Assembly: GCA_043228905.1 (NCBI GenBank)
Contig: JBHGNT010000002.1
Span: forward strand, 9,858,001-9,922,000
From: Azolla caroliniana
Taxonomy: Eukaryota > Plantae > Polypodiophyta
Length of the DNA stretch: 64,000 bases
Reading direction: 5' to 3'
Shown: one piece after another, positions 21,075-61,983 of the stretch
Layout of the letters: every line of letters starts with the position of its first letter
How positions within the stretch are numbered: the stretch's first letter is position 1
The notes under the pieces: model-generated
The model's database searches: none
The model's input: the letters and a program-made list of their open reading frames with translations, nothing else
What the model was told of the DNA's origin: nothing
Translations under genes and position numbers: made by a program

Positions 21075-24000
21075 TATAAAAAAGAATAGTATACGGAAGC
21101 AATAGAAAACCGAACACAGAAACGCAGGTTTAATGGAGAGCTTGAATATACACAGTACGCGGGAGAGACAGACAAAGAGAGAGAATGCACACAAACTCTA
21201 TTAAAAAATAATACACAGTCTCTACATAGGATGTGCTTAGTGAGGACTTTTATACAAGTCCATACGGACTGACAGAAGTACTGACACATACTTCAATGCT
21301 CATCAGTGAACTCTACACTAACTCCCAAAATATATTCCTACGCGTAATATCTTTCCAATGGCCTCGTGGTTTACGCACCGCTACTGCTTCTCGTTGTGCA
21401 CCGGTTTACGCACCAGGTCAAGCCTAACCGATCGATTCCAACCGATCCGGTTCTCAGCTTGCACAGCCGATACGGCCAATGTTGAGCTTGTATCTCAACA
21501 CTCCCCCTCAAGCTCAACCTGAGGTTCCATCCGCTCTTACGGATCTACGCTCCAGTTCCTTCTGGCTTCACGCCTTGCTCGCGCTCCTCGACCTGTTCAA
21601 TTTTGTGTGTCTCGACCCTTCCGGTCGTCTTGCGTGCTCATGCGGCCCTTCTCAGCTCCATTGTTTTTGTGGTGTTGGCGCTTCTTTTGCTGCCTTCTCT
21701 TCCGTTTGGCCCTCAATTGATTCGTCGTATCTAAATCAAACATCTGAACCGACTCGGCTTCCTCCGATCGATTTTCGCTTTCGTCCGAGTTGGCTGTCTC
21801 CAACTTGTCTTCGGTCTGATGGCTTCGTCTCCCCCATGGTTGGTTGGTTACGGCTCTTTCTTTTGACTGCTCCCCTTATGTCCACTTTCGGAATCTTCCG
21901 CGGATCCGTCTTGGGCTTCTTCAACCGATCCGAAATCGAATTCGTCATCCAACTCGGCGTCACAGTCTTCCGGAACTTCTCTCCCCCTTCCATGGTCATT
22001 CAGAACGTCTCTCCCCCTCAAGTTCGGCACGTCGAGGTGACGCAACCCAAGCACACCCGAGAATTGTCATAACTTGTCCAGTCCAAGAGGCTTGGTGAAA
22101 ATGTCGGCGGTCTGCCGATCCGTCGGAACATATTGAAGTTCGACTTCACCGGAGAGGACACGCTCACGGATGAAATGCTAGTGCACCTCAATGTGCTTAG
22201 TCCGGGCGTGGAAGACGGGGTTCTTTGCTAGCTAGATGCTACTGAGGTTGTTGCAGTAGATTGTAGTTGGATCGGATACCTCCGCCTGCAGATCCTTAAG
22301 TAGCCGCTTCAACCATATGGTTTCACATGTCGCGACATCCGCTTCTCTATACTCGGCTTTGGTGCTCGATAGCACAACTGTCGGCTACTTCTTGCTACTC
22401 CATGAGATCATGGCACTCCCAAGAGAGAACGCAAAACCGGACGTGGATCGGCGATCGGCAACATTGTCGGCCCAGTCGGCATCGGTGTAGTCGACCAACT
22501 ATGGGGCTATACCGGTCCAATATAGTAGCCCCCGGTCCTTATTGCCGCTTAGTACCCCAGTACGCGTTGCGCACACTGAAGATGCTCCTCGGTAGGTTGC
22601 GCCATGAATTGACTAATCACCCCAATCGGGTGGCTAAGATCTAGTCGGGTGATGGTCAAGTATATAAGGCTTCCAACTATCTGTCGGAACCTCGTCGGGT
22701 CGCATACCTTTCCGGAATTGGGGCGAAGCTTGACGGTTCTACCCAGAGGAGTCGAGACGGACTTACAGTCGGCCATCCAAAATTTGAAGAGCATACTCAA
22801 CACATAATGTCGTTGGCTAATCAGTATGCCTTCGGGGGTGCGGATCACTTCGATCCCGAGGAAGTAATTGTTAGGATCTCGGTCCCTCCGAAAGGGATAC
22901 GAAGGCCCGGCATCAGAAGACCCGATGAGAACCGGATGTGGAGTACCCGGCAATGGAAGACCCGTTGAGAACCGGATGACGAGTACCCGGCAAGGAATAC
23001 CCGGCGAGAACCAGATGTTGCAAGCCCAGTGAGAACCTCTCATCGGATGGAAGGGACATATATGTAAATATGTTCCAGAGAGCCCACTGGGGCTATATTT
23101 GTAAATAGCCTGAAAGTCATATTAGTATAAATATGACCTAGGGCAAACTCAAAAGATGATGATAGAGTTATTGGTGTAACTCTTGTACAGTGCGTAAGAG
23201 AGAGAGAGAGAGAGAGAGCGCACGATATACAGAGATTGTGTCTCTGTTGTAACCACTGCTAGGCGAAGATTGTGAGCAAGAGGTCGTTGCCTCTGTGCTC
23301 CCTGTTGTACTCCTTGACATAGTGATAGTTTGGAGTCTGTGGACTCCCGTGGCTTTTTCGTCTCAGGGTTTTCCACGTTAACATCCTGTGTATTCTCTTT
23401 TTGTTTGTGTACTTACCTCCATTCCCATTTCTTCTGTGTTTGATTGTCATCAAGCGATCTACGCTTCAGTTGTGGCCGGAGATTATTCCACATATTTCTC
23501 GTCAATAATGAAGGTCCCCCAGATCCTTCATGTCAAATGATGTCGCAAGCTGGAGCTTCACGCGGTTAATCTCACCAAGGTCGGCACCGGTGATGACCAA
23601 GTCATCAACATAAAGTAAAATGCTAACCGGCCCAAGTCGACCTTTCCAAATGAACAGTGAGGAGTCCAATTTTGACATCGCAAAGCCCATCCGACGCAAT
23701 CGTTGCGTGATCTTTGCATTCCAGGCACACGGGGCTTGCTTTAGTCCGTAAAGGGACTTCTTCAACCGGCACACCGCCGAGGTGTTCGTTCCGGAGCGAA
23801 ATCCGGGGAGTTGTACCATGTACACCTGTTCCTCAAGCTCACCTTGCATGAACGCATTCTTTACATCCATCTGATGTAAGTGCCACCCCTTCGCCGCAGC
23901 TACTGCAAGAAAAACGCGAACAATCGTCATCTTCGCGACCGGTGCAAACGTCTCATCATAGTCGATGTCGTGTTGCTGCACGTAGCCTTTCGCTACTAAC

Positions 24001-24265
24001 CGGGCCTTGTATCGGTTGACCGAGCCGTCAGTGTTGTACTTGACCATGTACACCCACCTACATCCGATCGGCTTCACACCTTTCGGTGCATCAACCAGGT
24101 CCCAGGTTTCATTCTCTGCCAACGCGTGCATCTCTTCCTCCATTGCGGCACGCCAATTCGCATCCTTCGTCGCTTCTGTGTAGCTCTCACGGGTCATGTA
24201 TGCATAGTGATGCGCCATGTACTCATTGTATCCGAACCGCACAACAGGGTTCTTCTAGCCGTTTA
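21075..24265 (-). mobile_element. Truncated Copia (family C): 3' LTR 21075-21500, pol tail, RNase H and RT; nested in Gypsy-2
   Basis: Homologous to 41251-43820; RT ORF 23502-24242 ([14 protein letters not shown]); 5' half lost. Confidence 0.9.
22869..23504 (+). repeat. Solo LTR (Tnt1/Tork-like family) inserted in the Copia RT
   Basis: TG...CA; TSD GTAAT/ATAAT; removing it restores DLHYFLGIEV; related to LTR 16130-16686 in opposite orientation. Confidence 0.85.
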
Positions 24266-41391: not shown

Positions 41392-44300
41392 AGACGAACT
41401 ATATTCAATAACAACCCAATCTCTATTCACCACACTCTATACATATGTGTGTTCCATGAACACTTTTATACAAGTCCTCGAAGGACTGACAGAAGTATTG
41501 ACCGTACTTCAATGCTCTTTAAGAGCTCCTACACTAACTCCAAAATATATTCCTCACAGAATATCTTTCCTAACGGCCTCCCGGTTTACACACTCGGCCT
41601 AACCGATCGGTCCCAACAGATCCGGTCCTCGGCTTCTTCAGTCGATCCGGCCTATGTTGAGCTTGTCTCTCAACACTTCCCCTCAAGCTCAACTCGAGGA
41701 TCTTCGGGATCCTCGGGCTCACAGCTCCGGTTCCTCCTGGCTTCACGCCTCGCTTGCGCTCCTCGACCTGTTCGACTTCGCGCACTTCGACCCTTCCGGT
41801 CGGCTTGTCTGCTCATGTGGCCCTCATCAGCTCTCCTGCTGTTGCGGTGTTGACGCTTCTTCTACTGCCTTTTCTTCCGCTTGGGCCTCGGTTGATTCAG
41901 CGTGTCTGAATCAAACATCCAAACCGACTCGGCTACCTCCGATAGGTTTTCGCTCTCGTCTGAGTTGGCTGTCTCCAACTCGTCTTCGGTCTTCTCGCCC
42001 TCGATGGCGTCATCTTCCCAATTCGTGGTTGGCTTCGTCTCTCTCCTTCGGCTGCTCCCCTTATGTCCGATTTCGGATTTTTCCGCGGGTCTGCCCTCGG
42101 CTTCTTCAGCCAATCCGAAGTCGAACTCGAGAACCGACTCATTGTCCCAGTCTCCGCTCCTTTCCTGCTGCCTTGCTTGGTCGTTCGGGACTGTTCTCCC
42201 CCTCAAGTTCGGCACGTCGAGGTGACGCAATCCGAGCGCACCCAAGAATTGCCGCAACTTGTCCAGACCAAGAGGCTTGGTGAAGATGTCGGCAATCTGC
42301 CGATCCGTCGGAACGTACTAAAGTTCGACTTCACCGGAAAGGACACACTCATGGACGAAATGGTAGTCCACCTCAATGTGCTTGGTCCGTGCATGGAAAA
42401 CGGGGTTTTTCGCGAGCTGCATGCTGCTGAGGTTGTCGCAGTAGATCGTCGTCGGATCTGACACCTCCTCTTGCAGGTCCTTAAGTAGCCGCTTCAACCA
42501 TATGGCTTCGCATGTTGCGACAGCCGCTCCTCGGTACTCAGCTTCGGTGCTCGACAATGCAACTGTCGGCTGCTTCTTACTGCTCCACGCGATTGCGGCA
42601 CTCCCGAGGGAGAACGCGTATCCGGACGTGGATCGGCGATCAGCGGCATTGCCAGCCCAGTTAGCATCGGTGTAGCCGACTAACCGCGCGGCTTCACCGG
42701 TCCGATATAGCAGTCCACGGTCCTTAGTACCGCTTATGTACTGCAGTACGCGTTGCGCACACTGAAGGTGCTCCTCGGTAGGTCACGCCATGAACTGACT
42801 GATCACCCCGACCGGATAACTGAGGTCGGGTCGGGTGATGGTCAAGTATATGAGGCTTCCGACAATTTGTCGGAACCTCGTCGGGTCGCATACCTTTCCC
42901 GTGTTGGGACGAAGCTTGACGGTTCTGTCCAGAGGAGTCAAGACGGACTTACAGTCGGCCATCCCGAATATGAAGAGCATACCCAGCACGTAATGACATT
43001 GGCTGATCAATATGCCTTCGGGCGTACAGATCACTTCGATCCCGAGGAAGTAATGAAGGTCCCCCAGATCCTTCATGTCGAACGATGCCGCAAGCTGGAG
43101 CTTCACACGGTCGATTTCACCTAGGTCGACGCCGGTGATGACCAAGTCATCAACATATAGTAAAATACTAACCGGTCCGAGTCGACCTTTCCGAATGAAC
43201 AGGGAAGAGTCTGATTTTGACGTGACGAAGCCCATCCGACGCAGTTGTTGCGTGATCTTCGCGTTCCAGGCATGCGGGGCTTGCTTCAATCCGTAAAGGG
43301 ACTTCTTCAGTCGGCATACTGCCGAGGAGTTTGTTCCGGAGTGAAATCTGGGGGGCTATACCATGTACACTTGTTCCTCAAGGTCACCTTGCAGGAACGC
43401 ATTTTTTACATCCATTTGATATAGGTGCCACCCCTTGGCCGCGGCTATTGCGAGCAAAACACGGACAGTCGTCATTTTCACGACCGGCGCAAATGTCTCA
43501 TCGTAGTCGATGTCGTGTTTCTGCACGTAGCCCTTTGCCACTAGCCGAGCCTTGTACCAGTTGACCGAGCCATCGGTGTTGTACTTGACCTTGTACACCC
43601 ACCTACACCCGATCGGTTTTACCCCTTTTGGTGTGTCAACCAGGTCCCATGTCTCGTTCTCCGCCAATGCGTGCATCTCTTCCTCCATCGCGGCACGCCA
43701 ATTCGCGTCTTTAGCCGCTTCTGCGTAGCTCTCTGGCTCACGCACTTCCGCTACACGGGTCATGTACGCATAATGATGTGCCATGTACTCGTTGTATCTG
43801 AACCGCAAGACATCGTTCTTCTGGAGGGTAGATCGGCGTAATCTCACATTAGCCGATGTCGAGGCCTTCTCGGTCGACGCAGACTTTACCTTTAAAGACC
43901 CGTCACCGGTTCCCTCGGAGTCGGACTCGCGTCGGTCTGACTCGTTCCTATCCGTGCCAAAATCCGATACCTTCTTCTTCCCTTTCTCTTTGCGCGTAAG
44001 CCGTCTCCTTGGCTTCCTGCGCGGGGAATGCACGGCCGAGTCTCCACTACTCGCCGGCTCTTCATCAGACTGGTCGTACCGACTCAGTCGTCCAATCGGT
44101 CCACTTAAACGGAGCGAAATCGGACTCTCTTCGCGGGTCTCGATTTCGGGCTCACCCGGAGGCAGCTCGGCCTCGTTGACCTCATCGTCAGAACTCGGCT
44201 TGGAGTCAGGGTTCGGAGTCGGGGGCTGGTACCAGGACGCGGACTCGTCAAACACAACGTCGCGGCTAACACGCGCTTGTTTGGTGCGAGGGTTATAGCA

Positions 44301-46357
44301 CTTATAACCCTTCTGCTTGTCCGAGTAACCGACCAAGATGCATTTCTCGGCCTTTGCGTCCAGCTTCCTCCTTTTCTCCTTCGGTACATGCACATACGCA
44401 ATGCTACCGAACACCCTCAAGTGTCGCAAGTTCGGCTTCGTTCCGAAATACAGCTCGTGCGCTGACACTTTGTCTCCGATCCGGTTCTGGATGTATACCG
44501 CGGTCCTCACCGCCTCGGCCCAGTAGAACTTGGGCAATCTCTTCTCCTCCAACATTGCCCGTGCCGCTTCCACAACTAACCGATTCTTCCTCTCGGCCAC
44601 GCCGTTCTGCTCCGGCGTGTATCTACAACTGAATTCGCGGCGAATTCCCATTTGTTGTAGGTAACCGTTGAATTGACCAGAAAAGTACTCTTTCCCGCCA
44701 TCCGACCGCAGGCACCTGATCTTTCGTCCCGTGTCCGTTTCCACGAACCCTTTGAGGTCCCGGAAACAGTCGAAGACTTCGCTCTTCCTCTCAATGAGGT
44801 AGATCCACGTGTGCCGCGTGTGGTCGTCGATGAAGGAGACGAAATATCGGCTCCCGCCAAGACTAACGTTTTGTGCCGGCCCCCACACATCGGAGTGTAT
44901 AAGGTCGAGCTTGTTCCGGCTTCGGTTTCGCTCGTTGGGGAAAGGAAGTCGGTGTTGCTTCTCGAGCTGGCAGGCTTCACAAATTTGTGCCTTTCGGCCA
45001 CTAAATTTGGGCAATCCGAACACTACCTGTTTCGATTGCAGATCTTGAAGCCGTTGGTAGTTGATGTGGCCTATCCGCTTGTGCCACAAGTCAATGTCCA
45101 ACTGGGTTTTTGTCCCTTCGCGAACATTGCGGTGCCACCGTCAGTGGAGTCGAGGATGAACATCCTCCCGTCTCTGCGCCCTTGCGCAATCACACGGCCT
45201 TCTTCCTCAATGAAGCACCCGAGGTGTGTAAACCGAACCTCCATCCCTTGGTCGACGATCTGTCCGACCGAGACCAAGTTCTTCGTGATTGTCGGAACGT
45301 GCAGCACGTTCATGAGTTTCCCTTTCTGCCCGACATGGCTAAGGGGAACTTCTCCGACATTCGCGATCGGATGCGAAGTGTCGTCTCCAGTTGCGACTAC
45401 TCCAGGTTGTATCGGTTTTTCAAGGTACGAGAACCACTCCTTATGGCTCGTCATGTGGTTTGACGTGCTGGAGTTGCTGTCGGCATCACTTCGGTGCCTT
45501 CTTCCTTGATCTCGTCGGCCGCCTCCATTGCGCGCCGACTTGCCTCGTCCTCCACGTCCACGGGGCCTATCTCCCTCCGTGTACAACATTCTACTGTCGG
45601 CGTGCGTGCTTGTAGACGCACCCGCGTGGTTCTCCTCTACCAGGAGCATTGACTGTAAGTCGAAAAAGGACAGCGTATTCTCCCGGGTACACACAGCCGT
45701 TCGGAACACTCCGAACTTCGACGCCAAACCTCCAAGATAGATCTGGACCATCTCGCTCTCCTCGATGTTCACCTCTATGGAGGTGAGGGAGTCGCAGATA
45801 TCCTTGATCTTCGAGGTATAGTCCGCCACCGACAAGTCGCGTTGTCGTAGGTTGCTCAACTCCTGTCGGAGCTAAAGCTTCCTGGCTGTGGTGCTCGCAG
45901 CGAAAATCTTCTTCAGATTTTCCCACGCACCCTTCGGCGTCTTTGCATCCCGAACATAGCTCAATAGCTGTTCGCCCACACACGACACGAAGCAGTACAA
46001 TACCCTGCTCGCCGATTGCTCCCACGACGGGAAGTCTCTGTGTGTCGATTCGGTTGCCGCGTCATTAGCTCCTTCGACATAACTCCAGTAGCCGTGCCCG
46101 AGCAGGTACTAGTGCATCTTGTAAGACCAAGACGCATAGTTGGTTCTGTCGAGCTTCTCTGTTGGAAGCGAGTTCGCCATGCCTCTATCCATCGTTCTTC
46201 TTGTTCTTCTTCGTCAAGCTGTGTCGGCTGCAGAGAGGTTCTCAACCCTCGCGCTCTGATACCATGTAGAAAGTAGCGTGCGGAAGCAAGTATTAAGACC
46301 GAACAGAAGGAAGGAAACTCAGGTTTAATGGAGAGCTAGAGCTTACACAGTATACGC

Positions 46358-51462: not shown

Positions 51463-54191
51463 ATGCCGCCCATTAAGAACAAATATTGGGATACATGTTG
51501 CCTCAATGTCGTAAGAAGTCAAACAGGAAATAGGAGTTGGAATTGTAAATTTTGCAATAAACATATGCATGGGTCAGCAACACGAATGATTGCTCATTTA
51601 ATTGGAAAACCTAGCCATGGAGTAACGAAATGTACCAATGTCCCCAAGGAAATGTTGATTGACCTTACAACTTTGTATGGTAATTGTGGAAGCCAAGCAA
51701 TTGGCGAAGAAGAAGATATAGTAGCAGAGATCGACTCATTCAACATGCATGAACAAGGTATAGACACAAGCCTACAATAGGTGTCTTGATTACTAATGTT
51801 TAAATAATTGTAAATTATTTATCTTGAATTTATTTTTCTTTTAGGTGTTTCTACCTCATGCTCGTCTACCTTTGTTGATGAAAGTCAAAGCATGTCATGT
51901 ATGGGTGGTGGTAGTCGCCAACCATATCCACCAGCAATTATAGTGAAACAACAACCGTTGCGTAAAGGACATGTGTTACAAATGCAAAGGAAACAACATG
52001 CAAACGTTATGGAGGTGAGATGTATCATTGAAGCAAATTTGTCATTTAATCTATTAAAAACACCATGTTGGCGGAACATGTTAGAAGCTTTCTCTACAAT
52101 TGGAGAGAAACATAATGGAGTCATATATAATTACATGAGGACGAACGGCTTGAAAAATGAGGTTATATCCTTGCAAGCAAAGTTAGAAAGGGTAAAAGGA
52201 TTATGGCCCAAGTATGGTTGTTCTATATTAACAGATGGATGGGTTGATGTTTCTCATAGGCAACTTGTAAATGTCCTCGTATCATCTTGTTATGGGACAA
52301 TGTTCCTCAAGTCCATTGATTGTAGTCATGCTAATACAACACCAACAGTTGATAGCTCTTGGTTAGCTGAAAGAATTTCAGAGGCAATTAGAGAAGTTGG
52401 TAAGGAAAATATGGTCCAAGTCATTTCAGACAATGCATCTAGTTGTGTCTGCATGGGGTCTTTGCTAGAATCAGAGTTCCCTAATATTGTTTGGACTCCA
52501 TGTGCAACCCATTCTTTGGATCTACTTTTGGAGGACATTGGTCAGCTGCCTTGGATGAAAAGTATTATGTTGAAAGCAAATAATATCGTACGTTTTTTTT
52601 GCAAGAAGAGGAATGCTAGGAAAAAAAATTCTGCTCACAGTAACCTCGCCATCTTGAGACCTTCTAAGACAAGGTTTGGTGTGATGTACCTTGTCATACA
52701 ACATTTGCTCAAAGTTTGGTATCCTCTTGAGAAAACAGTGGTGAGTGACATGTGGAGGTCTTGGTCAAATTGCAATAAGCCAGATGCCATGAATGTAAAG
52801 AACTACATCCTTGATCCTACAACTGAGTCCTCGTTTCAAGTTGTTTTGACCCTAATGGCACCATTGTATAGTGTTTTACGACTTACTGATAGGGAGGGAT
52901 CCACTATTGGTTTGTTATATGAGTTTATGCGAAGAAGCAAAGATGTTTTAGCAAAAGGAGTGGAAGAAAACATCCCCCACAAATCCAAGTAAATTTCATA
53001 TTTATTTTAATTTTTTATGGTTTCCTAGCATTAAACCTCCAAATGTTTTCTCATGTTTTAAGATCAGATCATTTTGTAATTACTAATACCCTTTTAGGTA
53101 CGAAGATGTTTTGAAGTTATTTGACATACGATGGAAATAGTTCAAGAGGCCGATCCACCTTGTAGCTCATTTGCTGCATCCGATGTGGAGAGAGGAGGCT
53201 ACATTTATTAACCCCGAGTTAATGGATGCATGGATGAGCTATACAGAAAAATTGTACTCGACACTTGAATGTGATATCTTATTTTGTGAATTGCATGAAT
53301 ATCGAAATGGTACAGGGACATTTAGCTATGCATTAGCACGTGAAGAGATATCTATGATGACGCTAGTCACATGGTGGGAAAATTTTGGTGGAAGAACTCC
53401 AAAGCTCCAAGCATTAGTTGTCCGCATATTATCCCAAGTAAGTGTCAAGTTTTGAAAAAATGATCAATTTTATAGTTAAGTTCTAAAATACTGCACTTTT
53501 GTGTACTACCTTTTATTTCATATTTTGTTTTCTATTAGGATTGCTCTTCTGGGGCAGCAGAAAGGAATTGGAATGCACATGCTCTCGCACATACAAAAAA
53601 TAGAAACAGACTAAAGGTAGCACAACTTGAACGATTGGTATATGTGCGAGAGAACTTAAGGCTAGTTCGCAAGTTTGAGACTGTGAATGCATCTCGAATG
53701 CAGGTATTGTTTTATTCACTTCTTATAATTTACATTCCTCAAATTTCGTTAAGCTTTTATAAACTTGTTTGCAGGTGAATCCAAATGAGATAGATGTCTC
53801 TAATACTCCTAATATTCCATCTATTAGCCACGAGAATGATATGGATAGAGAATTCGATGAAACTTATTTTCAAGAAACAATGAGCATGAGAAGAAGGACA
53901 AGGAGCATGACAAGATCACATACGACAACATCAAGCGATAGAGTCCCTATTGATCGAATACGGAGGCAGAGGCCAAGAAGAGAGGATGAGCGGTCTTCTT
54001 GTAATAGGAGAATAACAAGATCAAGTACATTTGCTTCTTTACCACCAAATGATCAAGATAATGTCAATGGAATAGAAGAAGCAATTCATACAAATTATGA
54101 TGATCTTACTGACGAAGAACCTATGTTGATGTCATCAACTAACACTGAATCTGATGATGAAGATGGTGATTGTGATGAGGACGAGATCTAA
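51463..54191 (+). pseudogene. hAT transposase (BED finger, DUF659-type core, hATC dimerisation domain), five exons
   Basis: Exons 51463-51780, 51845-52988, 53098-53437, 53539-53703 and 53775-54191 with GT-AG introns; motifs CKFC...HL, ILTDGW, SDNA, PCATHSLDL, WWENFGG...ERNW; in-frame TAG at 51778 and 53138. Confidence 0.9.
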
Positions 54192-59551: not shown

Positions 59552-60065
59552 TGCAATGATTATGTATAAATGAGCAAGCAGCTCACACAGATGGAGATGA
59601 TCATGGCCATAAGGAACTCCTCTTTTCTGCTGAGTCAGAAAAAGAAAGACCTGAATCAACAGGAACACAGAAAAATTTAGCAGAGAGAGAGAGAGAATGA
59701 CAGTGAACCCTCTGTAGTCCACTCCAAGCTGAGAAATAATATATATATGCATATATGCATATGCACAGTGTACTACTATAGAGGAACAGGAGAGAAGAGG
59801 GACAAAAGGGAAGGAAGATACATGTCAAACATATTACCGAGAAACAGTAGAAGGGGGAGGCAGAAAAAAAAAACAGGCATACATAAAGAAGATGTATATG
59901 TGTGAAGAAGGCATATAGGGGAGAGAGAGAGAGAGAGAGAGAAGGAGAAGACATACATACATACATATATGTGTGTGCAAAATTAATGTATGTATGTATG
60001 TATGTATATTGTAGAGGGAGAGAGATTTTGGATTATCAGGGAGAAGAAAAGGAGGTAAGGTGGCT

Positions 60066-60485
60066 ATGGCGAAGAGTAGCGTAGAAGAGGAGAGTTTGGT
60101 TGTGAGTAGTAGTAGTACTAGTAGTAGTAGTAGGGTTTCTTCCAGCCTCGACCAGAAACCGGCAAATACCAATATCAATAGCAATAGGTGTATAGCGGCG
60201 GCGGCGGCGGCGTCATCGTGGAGTGGCGTGGTGAAGAAGGGGTCTTGGACGCCGTGTGAGGATGCCCTACTGCTGGAATTCGTGGAGAGATATGGCGATG
60301 CAAACTGGAACAATGCGCACCTCCTGTTCCCGGGCCTCCGCCGCGGCGGCAAAAGCTGCCGGATGCGATACCGCAACCAGCTCCGCCTTGGCCTGCGCAA
60401 GGGCCCCTTCACACCTGCCGAGCAATTGCTTGTCACCCGCGGTGTCGCCCTCTACGGCAACCAATGGTCCAAGATCGCAGACATG
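60066..60485 (+). CDS. GAMYB-like R2R3-MYB transcription factor, exon 1 (R2 and most of R3)
   Basis: KKGSWTPCED...GKSCRMRY...KGPFT...GNQWSKIADM, then GT donor at 60486; 420 nt, phase-0 intron. Confidence 0.88.
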
Positions 60486-60861
60486 GTACTACTATGTGTT
60501 CTATATATATATATATATATATATATGAATGCTTCCTTCCATGCCTGCTCTTGTATGTATGTATGTATGTATGTATGTATGTATGTACAGCATCAGTCTG
60601 CATTCTTCTTCTTTCTTCATTCATGGTCATCGTCATGGAACCCTAATTTACGTTTTTATTATGCCCTCACAATGCCAATGCCAATGCCATTTCTTACTGC
60701 CCAGTGCTTGTGCTTCTCCTCAAAAACCCTACTTTGCTTTGTTGCTTCATTGTGGTTTGGGATTGGGATGGAATCATGCATTTTATTTCTTACTTCTTGC
60801 AATTGTGGTAGAAAACAAACAAACAAACAACCCCCCCCCCCCCTCTTCCATTCCATTGTAG

Positions 60862-61983
60862 CTTCCAGGCCGAACCGACAATAGCGTCAAGAACTTCTGG
60901 AATGTCCGGCTCAAGCGATTGAAACGCCAACAAGGCATCGAAGACGCGGTGAAACGTGCGAGGTCGTCCGCGGTCACACCCTCGAACCCGACCCATGACC
61001 TAAATCCAAGCCTTAGCTTAATACTAAACCCGAATCCAAATCCGAACCCGAACCCAATGTCACCGTCTTCATCATCCGCTTGCTCATCCATCACGGCCGG
61101 AGGTAGCAATGGAGATAATAAGAGCACCACTCGAACCAGTTCGACCACACACGTGAACACCTCCGTCGTCTTCACGAATGAAGACCCCCAACCCCTTGCA
61201 TGGATCCCTACTAGCTCCATGCTTGTGAAACCCCCCCTCCAAGAAGATGTGACATTAGGCCAATGTGAGCATGTGAAATCCCTAGAGGGCTTACGTTCGC
61301 CCCCGCCGCCTTTCGGTGCACCACACCAACTCCAATTCTTCTCCCACTTGCATATGCCTCCTCATCAACCCATCCATGTGAATGCAATCCAACAAGAGCT
61401 CCCTTCAGTCCAAACACCCCATCGTATCAACTGCCCCCGAGATGAATGCTTACTATCGGCCAATGCATACCACAAGAACACACCCTTAGCGGAGCACGTG
61501 CCTTTGTACCAAGTAACCCACATGAACCGCCCCCAAGATGAGAAGCTCCCTTCAGTCCAATTTTCACACCCCATGAACCCCCCCCAACATGATTGCCTAC
61601 CCTCCATCACACATGTGAATGCACCCGATATTCAGCCTTGTTCGTCTCACATCTTGTGTAGCCCCCCGGACAAAGATCTCTTGGAGGCCTTTGCAACCTC
61701 ACCCTACAACAACAACCATAACAAATACAATTATAACAACGGCGATGACAATGCCTCGTTCCTCACTGATTGTCTTCAAAGCCTAATGAATTGCTCCGAC
61801 GGCTCAAGCTCGCCTTCGTGTTCTAAGCTTCTAGAACCTTTGACTTCAAATTCATCGATCTCTCAATGCCTCGAGGTAGAGATGTCACCCTTCTTTAGTG
61901 GCACACTTGATAGTCTTGTTGTGTCAAGTTCCTTGATGTGGAGATCTATACCCACTTCCACTCCTTCCAATTTCCACTCCTAG
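60862..61983 (+). CDS. GAMYB-like R2R3-MYB, exon 2 (spliced product ~513 aa)
   Basis: AG acceptor at 60860-60861, then LPGRTDNSVKNFWNVRLKR, open to TAG at 61983. A single DBD intron just before LPGRTDN and the ELPSxQ miR159/319 box are GAMYB-clade traits. Confidence 0.88.
   Translation, partial: LPGRTDNSVKNFWNVRLKRLKRQQGIEDAVKRARSSAVTPSNPTHDLNPSLSLILNPNPNPNPNPMSPSSSSACSSITAGGSNGDNKSTTRTSSTTHVNTSVVFTNEDPQPLAWIPTSSMLVKPPLQEDVTLGQCEHVKSLEGLRSPPPPFGAPHQLQFFSHLHMPPHQPIHVNAIQQELPSVQTPHRINCPRDECLLSANAYHKNTPLAEHVPLYQVTHMNRPQDEKLPSVQFSHPMNPPQHDCLPSITHVNAPDIQPCSSHILCSPPDKDLLEAFATSPYNNNHNKYNYNNGDDNASFLTDCLQSLMNCSDGSSSPSCSKLLEPLTSNSSISQCLEVEMSPFFSGTLDSLVVSSSLMWRSIPTSTPSNFHS
61393..61413 (+). promoter_or_regulatory. 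miR319 (miR159/319 family) target site 1
   Basis: caaGAGCTCCCTTCAGTCCAA pairs perfectly with positions 1-18 of miR319 UUGGACUGAAGGGAGCUCCCU. Confidence 0.88.
61540..61560 (+). promoter_or_regulatory. miR319 target site 2
   Basis: gagaAGCTCCCTTCAGTCCAA pairs perfectly with miR319 positions 1-17. Confidence 0.86.

Follow-up and report, generated by a model that had tools for sequence, protein, structure and literature searches.

The pairing of miR159/miR319 with GAMYB mRNAs is among the oldest miRNA-target relationships of land plants, and it has been described with a single site per mRNA. Regulation of MYB/GAMYB mRNAs by miR319/159 has been inferred in Azolla and Lygodium, and the Lygodium GAMYB transcript Locus_7173 contains the core of the site once (PMC5426797 supplement). 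For Marchantia MpR2R3-MYB21, in which a single target sequence was mutated, miR319-guided cleavage has been documented (PMC12369473). One site is also what we found in L042, an open frame recovered in the present study, and it is the norm among these three comparators. This agrees with the initial annotation of the locus described here, which stated that GAMYB mRNAs usually carry one site.

Several sites for one miRNA are found in the PHO2/UBC24 mRNA, whose miR399 sites in the 5' UTR are generally read as strengthening repression and not as a TAS-like trigger. In the TAS3 system, the two-hit trigger relies on AGO7-miR390, no site of another miRNA can take the place of the 5' site, and dual cleavage out of phase leads to conflicting registers (de Felippes et al., PMC5435969). 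As to MYB genes, mRNAs hit by miR828 and miR858, such as that of cotton GhMYB2, are reported to yield phasiRNAs, and phasiRNAs are reported to arise mainly from targeting by a 22-nt miRNA (PMC7227086).

In this study, we characterized a MYB gene with two miR319 sites in a 64-kb window, that is, the whole stretch of DNA that was analysed. The initial annotation had proposed a two-hit phasiRNA locus, in which double slicing by miR319 would be followed by RDR6 copying and DCL4-type dicing into 21-nt phased siRNAs acting on the MYB gene itself or on its paralogues. We consider it likely that the locus is a live, lineage-specific R2R3-MYB gene carrying a duplicated miR319/159 module, that both sites most likely work, and that their 147-nt spacing is coincidental.

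The MYB gene and its duplicated miR319 site

The gene comprises two exons (Table 1), and the translation of exon 2 is free of stops up to the TAG codon. Exons 1 and 2 were searched separately in all protein searches; one protein query was the open frame of exon 1 extended into the intron (60060-60881) and limited to residues 50-142. Pfam PF00249 (Myb_DNA-binding) matched two stretches of exon 1 (E 1e-18), and the best PDB match of this exon was the plant R2R3-MYB WER (E 2e-16, residues 56-138). As R3 runs on into exon 2 (LPGRTDNSVKNFWN), the gene has the two adjacent Myb repeats of an R2R3-MYB. Both miR319 sites lie in the long, low-complexity C-terminal region encoded by exon 2. The microsatellites of the intron, found at 60491-60593 and 60805-60858 and including a C12 run, were excluded as repeats when contigs from public runs were placed on the locus. 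The surroundings of the gene are rich in transposons: open reading frames at 43356-45101 (-), 23502-24242 (-) and 51892-52992 (+) code for Copia-type integrase/reverse transcriptase and for DUF659 (hAT-transposase-associated).

Table 1. Features of the MYB gene in the window, and foldbacks found on metagenome contigs
Feature	Sequence	Position	Strand	Description
Exon 1	Window	60066-60485	+	ATG start; Ser-rich N-terminus of 57 residues, followed by R2 and the greater part of R3, up to ...WSKIADM
Intron	Window	60486-60861	+	GT...AG, phase 0; (TA)n, (TATG)n, (CAAA)n and poly-C microsatellites
Exon 2	Window	60862-61983	+	Opens with the end of R3, LPGRTDNSVKNFWN; stop TAG at 61981-61983
Repeat unit 1	Window	61375-61461	+	HVNAIQQE-LPSVQ-TPHRINCPRDECLLS; from direct-repeat families D1-D3 and D7 and codon alignment
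Putative miR319/miR159 site 1	Window	61394-61414	+	21-nt footprint; 17-mer at 61397-61413; encodes ELPSVQ; identical in L107 (1238-1258)
Spacer between footprints	Window	61415-61540	+	Coding; length differs between species
Repeat unit 2	Window	61519-61608	+	HMNRPQDEK-LPSVQ-FSHPMNPPQHDCLPS; from direct repeats and codon alignment
Putative miR319 site 2	Window	61541-61561	+	21-nt footprint; 17-mer at 61544-61560; encodes KLPSVQ; 17-mer identical in L107 (1424-1440)
Foldback	L014	1650-2090	-	Same assembly as L107; 441 nt, z -5.3; CUUGGACUGAAGGGAGCUCCA in 3' arm
Foldback	L046	430-720	-	Neighbouring assembly accession; 291 nt, z -5.2

The initial annotation had reported a 17-mer occurring twice in exon 2, with the copies ending at 61413 and 61560. 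Our search of the window recovered both copies of this 17-mer (AGCTCCCTTCAGTCCAA) on the forward strand, 147 nt apart from start to start. No further match was found in the 64-kb window at up to three mismatches (mean of 0.12 in shuffled sequences), and exon 2 showed no third, decayed site at up to five mismatches in either the window gene or its orthologue L107. Both sites are in frame and belong to a tandem-duplicated unit of about 30 codons, HxNxxQxE(K)-LPSVQ-xxHxxNxPxxxCLxS. The earlier description of an identical core, synonymous positions included, within strongly diverged flanks is borne out by the alignment of the two units: within the LPSVQ codons they match at 15/15 nucleotides and use the same codon at 5/5 residues, and outside these codons they match at 42/72 nucleotides (58%) and agree in codon at only 5 of the 10 residues they share. 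Each of Leu, Pro, Ser and Val can be encoded by four to six codons. In addition, the AG preceding the first LPSVQ codon is kept despite differing codons (GAG and AAG in the window gene, CAG in L107). Hence, the match extends toward the miRNA and not toward the peptide. Altogether, cores identical down to their synonymous positions in diverged flanks point to selection on the RNA sequence, not on the peptide alone.

For the pairing analysis, we used Marchantia miR319 (PMC12369473), the miR319 and miR159 isoforms of the fern Pleopeltis (PMC5426797) and, as an additional query, the mature miR319 of a hairpin in the assembly that contains L107. The penalty of miR319 was 1-3 at all four sites of the two species, with miRNA positions 2-18 fully paired. 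Both window sites gave this penalty with the three published fern miR319 isoforms and with the hairpin-derived miR319, which is consistent with the previous identification of the 17-mer as the miR319 complement. At site 1, miRNA nucleotides 2-19 pair with CUUGGACUGAAGGGAGCUCCC; at site 2, nucleotides 2-18 and 20 are paired. There is no mismatch at miRNA positions 2-13 or across positions 10/11, as expected of slicing-type sites. Fern miR159 pairs well with site 1 (penalty 2.0) and more weakly with site 2 (4.5). The cuts previously placed at 61403/61404 and 61550/61551 agree with those predicted for the UUGG isoform of miR319; for the 21-nt CUUGG isoform they shift by one base, to 61404/61405 and 61551/61552. 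The interval between the predicted cuts is 147 nt with either isoform.

We also considered whether the locus might itself be a hairpin or MIR gene. When region 61370-61600 was folded and compared with shuffled sequences, the sense strand appeared unstructured (z +0.79) and the antisense strand showed no hairpin (z -0.19); neither strand folds better than shuffles, and the Rfam search of the window returned no match. These results rule out a MIR gene and indicate that the locus is a target.

The orthologue and the spacing of the sites

An exact scan of metagenome contigs with the 17-mer detected at least 120 loci. Most of the matches listed are MIR319-type foldbacks, in which an imperfect inverted partner lies at a distance of about 150 nt. 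Among these listed matches, the sole orthologue recovered with both sites is L107 (ENA assembly ERZ1034377, 2484 nt), which carries two exact 17-mers in one frame of 405 codons. L107 covers the end of exon 1 (residues 61-140) with 98.75% amino-acid identity over 80 residues. Its intron is 344 nt long and about 70-90% identical to that of the window gene, in patches, with the same GT/AG and both exon borders. The amino-acid identity of exon 2 is 72% by BLASTP over all 373 residues and 70% by tblastn. The aligned codons of this exon share 84.5% of their nucleotides and give a dS of 0.33 and a dN/dS of 0.40, and the MYB part gives a dN of 0.011 and a dS of 0.27. These values indicate that the gene is alive and constrained in both species and that the two taxa are clearly different. 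Judged by the substitution rates, the MYB gene is under purifying selection.

Both 17-mers are unchanged in L107 (34/34 nucleotides), whereas a dS of 0.33 predicts some three synonymous changes across the ten codons of the sites. This conservation of the sites at the synonymous level is modestly significant (P of about 0.04-0.2, by model). The LPSVQ peptide itself could also be under protein-level selection. Under this explanation, (E/K)LPSVQ would be kept as a functional peptide, for example as an activation or interaction box, and at most one copy would be used by the miRNA. In its favour, the repeated unit HxNxxQxE-LPSVQ-xxHxxNxP...CLxS is conserved in both species, and the two generally share the codon of a conserved residue (85%), so that unchanged site codons are only weakly surprising (P of about 0.2). 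However, selection on the peptide does not account for the contrast in codon usage between the core and the flanks of the two units, nor for the retained AG, which matches the miRNA. We therefore regard a purely peptide-based explanation as unlikely and conclude that the double site is probably selected at the RNA level.

The identity of the cores might also carry no function and stem from chance, recent gene conversion or an assembly artefact. Nothing specific speaks for this, apart from the fact that short gene-conversion tracts can homogenise repeats. The number of matches expected by chance in the window is small, as given above, and the boundaries of the conserved tract are exactly those of the miR319 complement. 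Moreover, both exact cores are present at a different spacing in L107, which was assembled independently, and the dS of exon 2 argues against L107 being the same species or assembly. The region of site 2 was also found in contigs of two public runs. Three low-coverage public contig runs matched the locus, none of them recorded as RNA. The contig of run X1 is identical to the window over 61511-61697. Run X2 (organism B) shows about 93% identity across 61533-61904 and in parts of exon 1; its contig spans site 2 only and has the 17-mer unchanged, with a 3-nt insertion immediately after it. The contigs of X1 and X2 are short and DNA-like, with no joints and no read ends. On balance, a functionless origin of the identical cores appears very improbable.

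The retention of both 17-mers in L107 reveals that the double site is conserved and that the duplication predates the split of the two species. The spacing is a different matter. The sites of L107 are 183 nt apart, and 183 modulo 21 is 15; the difference from 147 nt is made up of four separate indels, all in frame, within the spacer, where L107 has 12, 9, 12 and 3 additional nucleotides. Over 44 codons of the spacer, dN equals dS at 0.16, with no sign of nucleotide-level constraint beyond coding, and its length varies freely. Any spacing that keeps the frame has a prior chance of one in seven of being a multiple of 21. Together with the 183 nt of L107, this leads us to read 147 = 7 x 21 as chance. 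Thus, the arithmetic of the initial annotation is correct, and the 21-nt register does not stand as a conserved design. Comparison with an orthologue had been proposed in advance as a check: L107 retains two sites and does not keep the 21-nt spacing register, the latter being an outcome set beforehand against the phasiRNA reading.

Other lines of evidence bear on the production of phased siRNAs from this locus. The two sites are highly complementary to miR319 and, by their pairing, probably cleavable, and in the window genome the spacing does equal seven registers. Ferns have miR390 and TAS3, hence the machinery for secondary siRNAs exists. A PHAS locus with a miR159/319 trigger has been predicted computationally in Ginkgo (PMC12158005), and a cotton MYB mRNA with miR828 and miR858 sites is reported to give phasiRNAs (PMC7227086). 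On the other hand, the register is unconserved between the two species, and the freely varying spacer shows no additional constraint. The TAS3 trigger depends on AGO7 and miR390, and dual cleavage out of phase would produce conflicting registers (PMC5435969). Furthermore, the miR319 isoforms published for ferns have lengths of 20-21 nt and not 22 nt (PMC5426797), and miR159/319 is absent from the known phasiRNA triggers listed for ferns. Consequently, the phasiRNA reading has lost its main argument, and a two-hit phasiRNA locus is a possible but improbable explanation. We hold it similarly improbable that the MYB mRNA is routed to RDR6-dependent siRNAs at all, by a two-hit trigger that would use an ordinary 21-nt miRNA outside the miR390/AGO7 pathway. 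If such routing were to take place, the cuts would set one register in the window species and two registers in its L107 relative. We advise against counting the 7 x 21 register in support of phasing.

The evidence fits better a duplicated miR319/159 module without a fixed spacing. A classical miR319/miR159 target module would have been duplicated before the split from the L107 species. After the split, the flanks, the length of the spacer and most of the C-terminal protein would have drifted, with both 17-nt cores unchanged. Cores that remain identical in drifting surroundings suggest that both are most likely working miR319 sites. In this scenario, AGO1 loaded with a 20-21-nt miR319 would bind the mRNA and slice it at either site, and site 1 might also be bound by AGO1 loaded with miR159. 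The mRNA would then have two separate opportunities to be sliced or blocked in translation, so that repression would be stronger or more robust than a single site allows, and the duplication may make the control of this regulator, presumably harmful when misexpressed, more fail-safe.

Lineage-specific relatives and MIR319-type foldbacks

The relatives of this gene are remarkably few. When exon 2 was searched against 5.8 billion proteins, the only match was a Dillenia MYB, by way of the R3 tail, and the 347 C-terminal residues found no match among 1.8 billion cluster representatives. By these searches, the C-terminus is unique to the lineage. The MYB domain shares 5-residue words with only 24 candidates among the 5.8 billion proteins, and its search matches were P0002, a metagenome relative, and a fungal protein. 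P0002, the only close relative (93% identical), comes from L001, a JGI metagenome contig of 1 kb with exon 1 only. The identity of the MYB domain to an ordinary R2R3-MYB is about 40%. In R2, the third conserved Trp is replaced by Tyr, and the region of the recognition helix (SCRMRYRNQLRLGLRKG) is unusual; typical members of the family show SCRLRW.N.L.P at this position. Both peculiarities are kept in three independent sequences (window, 60228-60400; L107, 83-322; L001, 695-946). From these residues, the DNA-binding specificity of the protein may differ from that of ordinary R2R3-MYBs. Since no relatives of this very divergent MYB were detected beyond its lineage, the gene may represent a branch of the miR319 network confined to that lineage.

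The designation of the gene as GAMYB-like can be maintained in part. The site is of the GAMYB type, and the (E/K)LPSVQ frame of both sites fits the (D/E)LPSxQ reading of GAMYB, a sharing of frame that alone has a one-in-three chance. In GAMYB proteins, box 1 is a motif of the QRAGLPxYP type directly after R3. We did not recognise this box after R3 in the exon 2 translation, where the sequence is KRLKRQQGIEDAVKRARSS..., and the divergent MYB domain and the C-terminus without relatives also speak against the designation. We classify the gene as an R2R3-MYB with a GAMYB-type miR319 module, and its identity as a GAMYB is only partly supported.

The scan also recovered candidate sources of the miRNA. 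Two foldbacks, one of them from the same assembly as L107 (Table 1), contain CUUGGACUGAAGGGAGCUCC(A/U) in the 3' arm, the place of miR319. Both hairpins are unusually long for the MIR319 type, and no family was reported for either of them at Rfam gathering thresholds. Given these MIR319-type foldbacks in the assembly series of L107, the plant with the double-site MYB plausibly has a miR319 gene of matching sequence, too. A further metagenome locus, L042 (741-1763, +; ENA assembly ERZ1034401), is an open frame of 341 codons that contains one ELPSVQ miR319 site; its sole match in the protein database was itself. L042 may derive from a more canonical GAMYB-like gene of a seed-free plant, with one site, and form its C-terminal exon.

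Separately, contig L008 (JAEIGA010035461.1; 5900-6250, minus strand; 1400-1640 of the reverse complement) shows five to six miR319-complement-like motifs with 0-2 mismatches in the 15-nt core. These motifs are non-coding and spaced by 34, 34, 68, 28 and 28 nt. The contig looks organellar because it holds six tRNA genes in about 4 kb. L008 was considered as a TAS-like or sponge locus and set aside, given its organellar appearance and motifs that are probably a local repeat.

Comparison with known systems

The double site is a variation on the ancient miR319/159-MYB module for which we found no description in the literature searched. Its retention in two species reveals that the number of sites, besides their sequence, can evolve within the miR319/159-GAMYB module. 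This locus may also offer a natural test, in a seed-free plant, of what a pair of sites for an ordinary 21-nt miRNA brings about, stronger repression or secondary siRNAs.

The TAS3/miR390 system resembles this locus in that one transcript carries two sites for a single 21-nt miRNA flanking a short interval, as is also the case in moss TAS. Unlike TAS3, which is non-coding and relies on AGO7-miR390, the locus described here is a coding mRNA, its miRNA is miR319, and its register is unconserved. The miR828/miR858 MYBs share with it a single MYB mRNA with two miRNA sites. In that system, the sites belong to two different miRNAs, one of them 22 nt long, and lie in the region of the MYB domain. The gene reported here carries, in contrast, two copies of the site of one 20-21-nt miRNA in its C-terminal region. 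The PHO2/UBC24 mRNA is similar in being a protein-coding mRNA with multiple sites for one 21-nt miRNA. The sites of PHO2 are in the 5' UTR, whereas those of the MYB gene are inside the open reading frame, within a duplicated coding block.

The pairing of miR159/miR319 with GAMYB (MYB33-like) mRNAs has in common with this gene a coding-region site downstream of the MYB domain, a near-perfect complement and the (D/E)LPSxQ frame, with DLPSVQT at the single site of Lygodium and ELPSVQT at site 1 here. The gene departs from this system in having two sites instead of one and an unusually divergent MYB domain.
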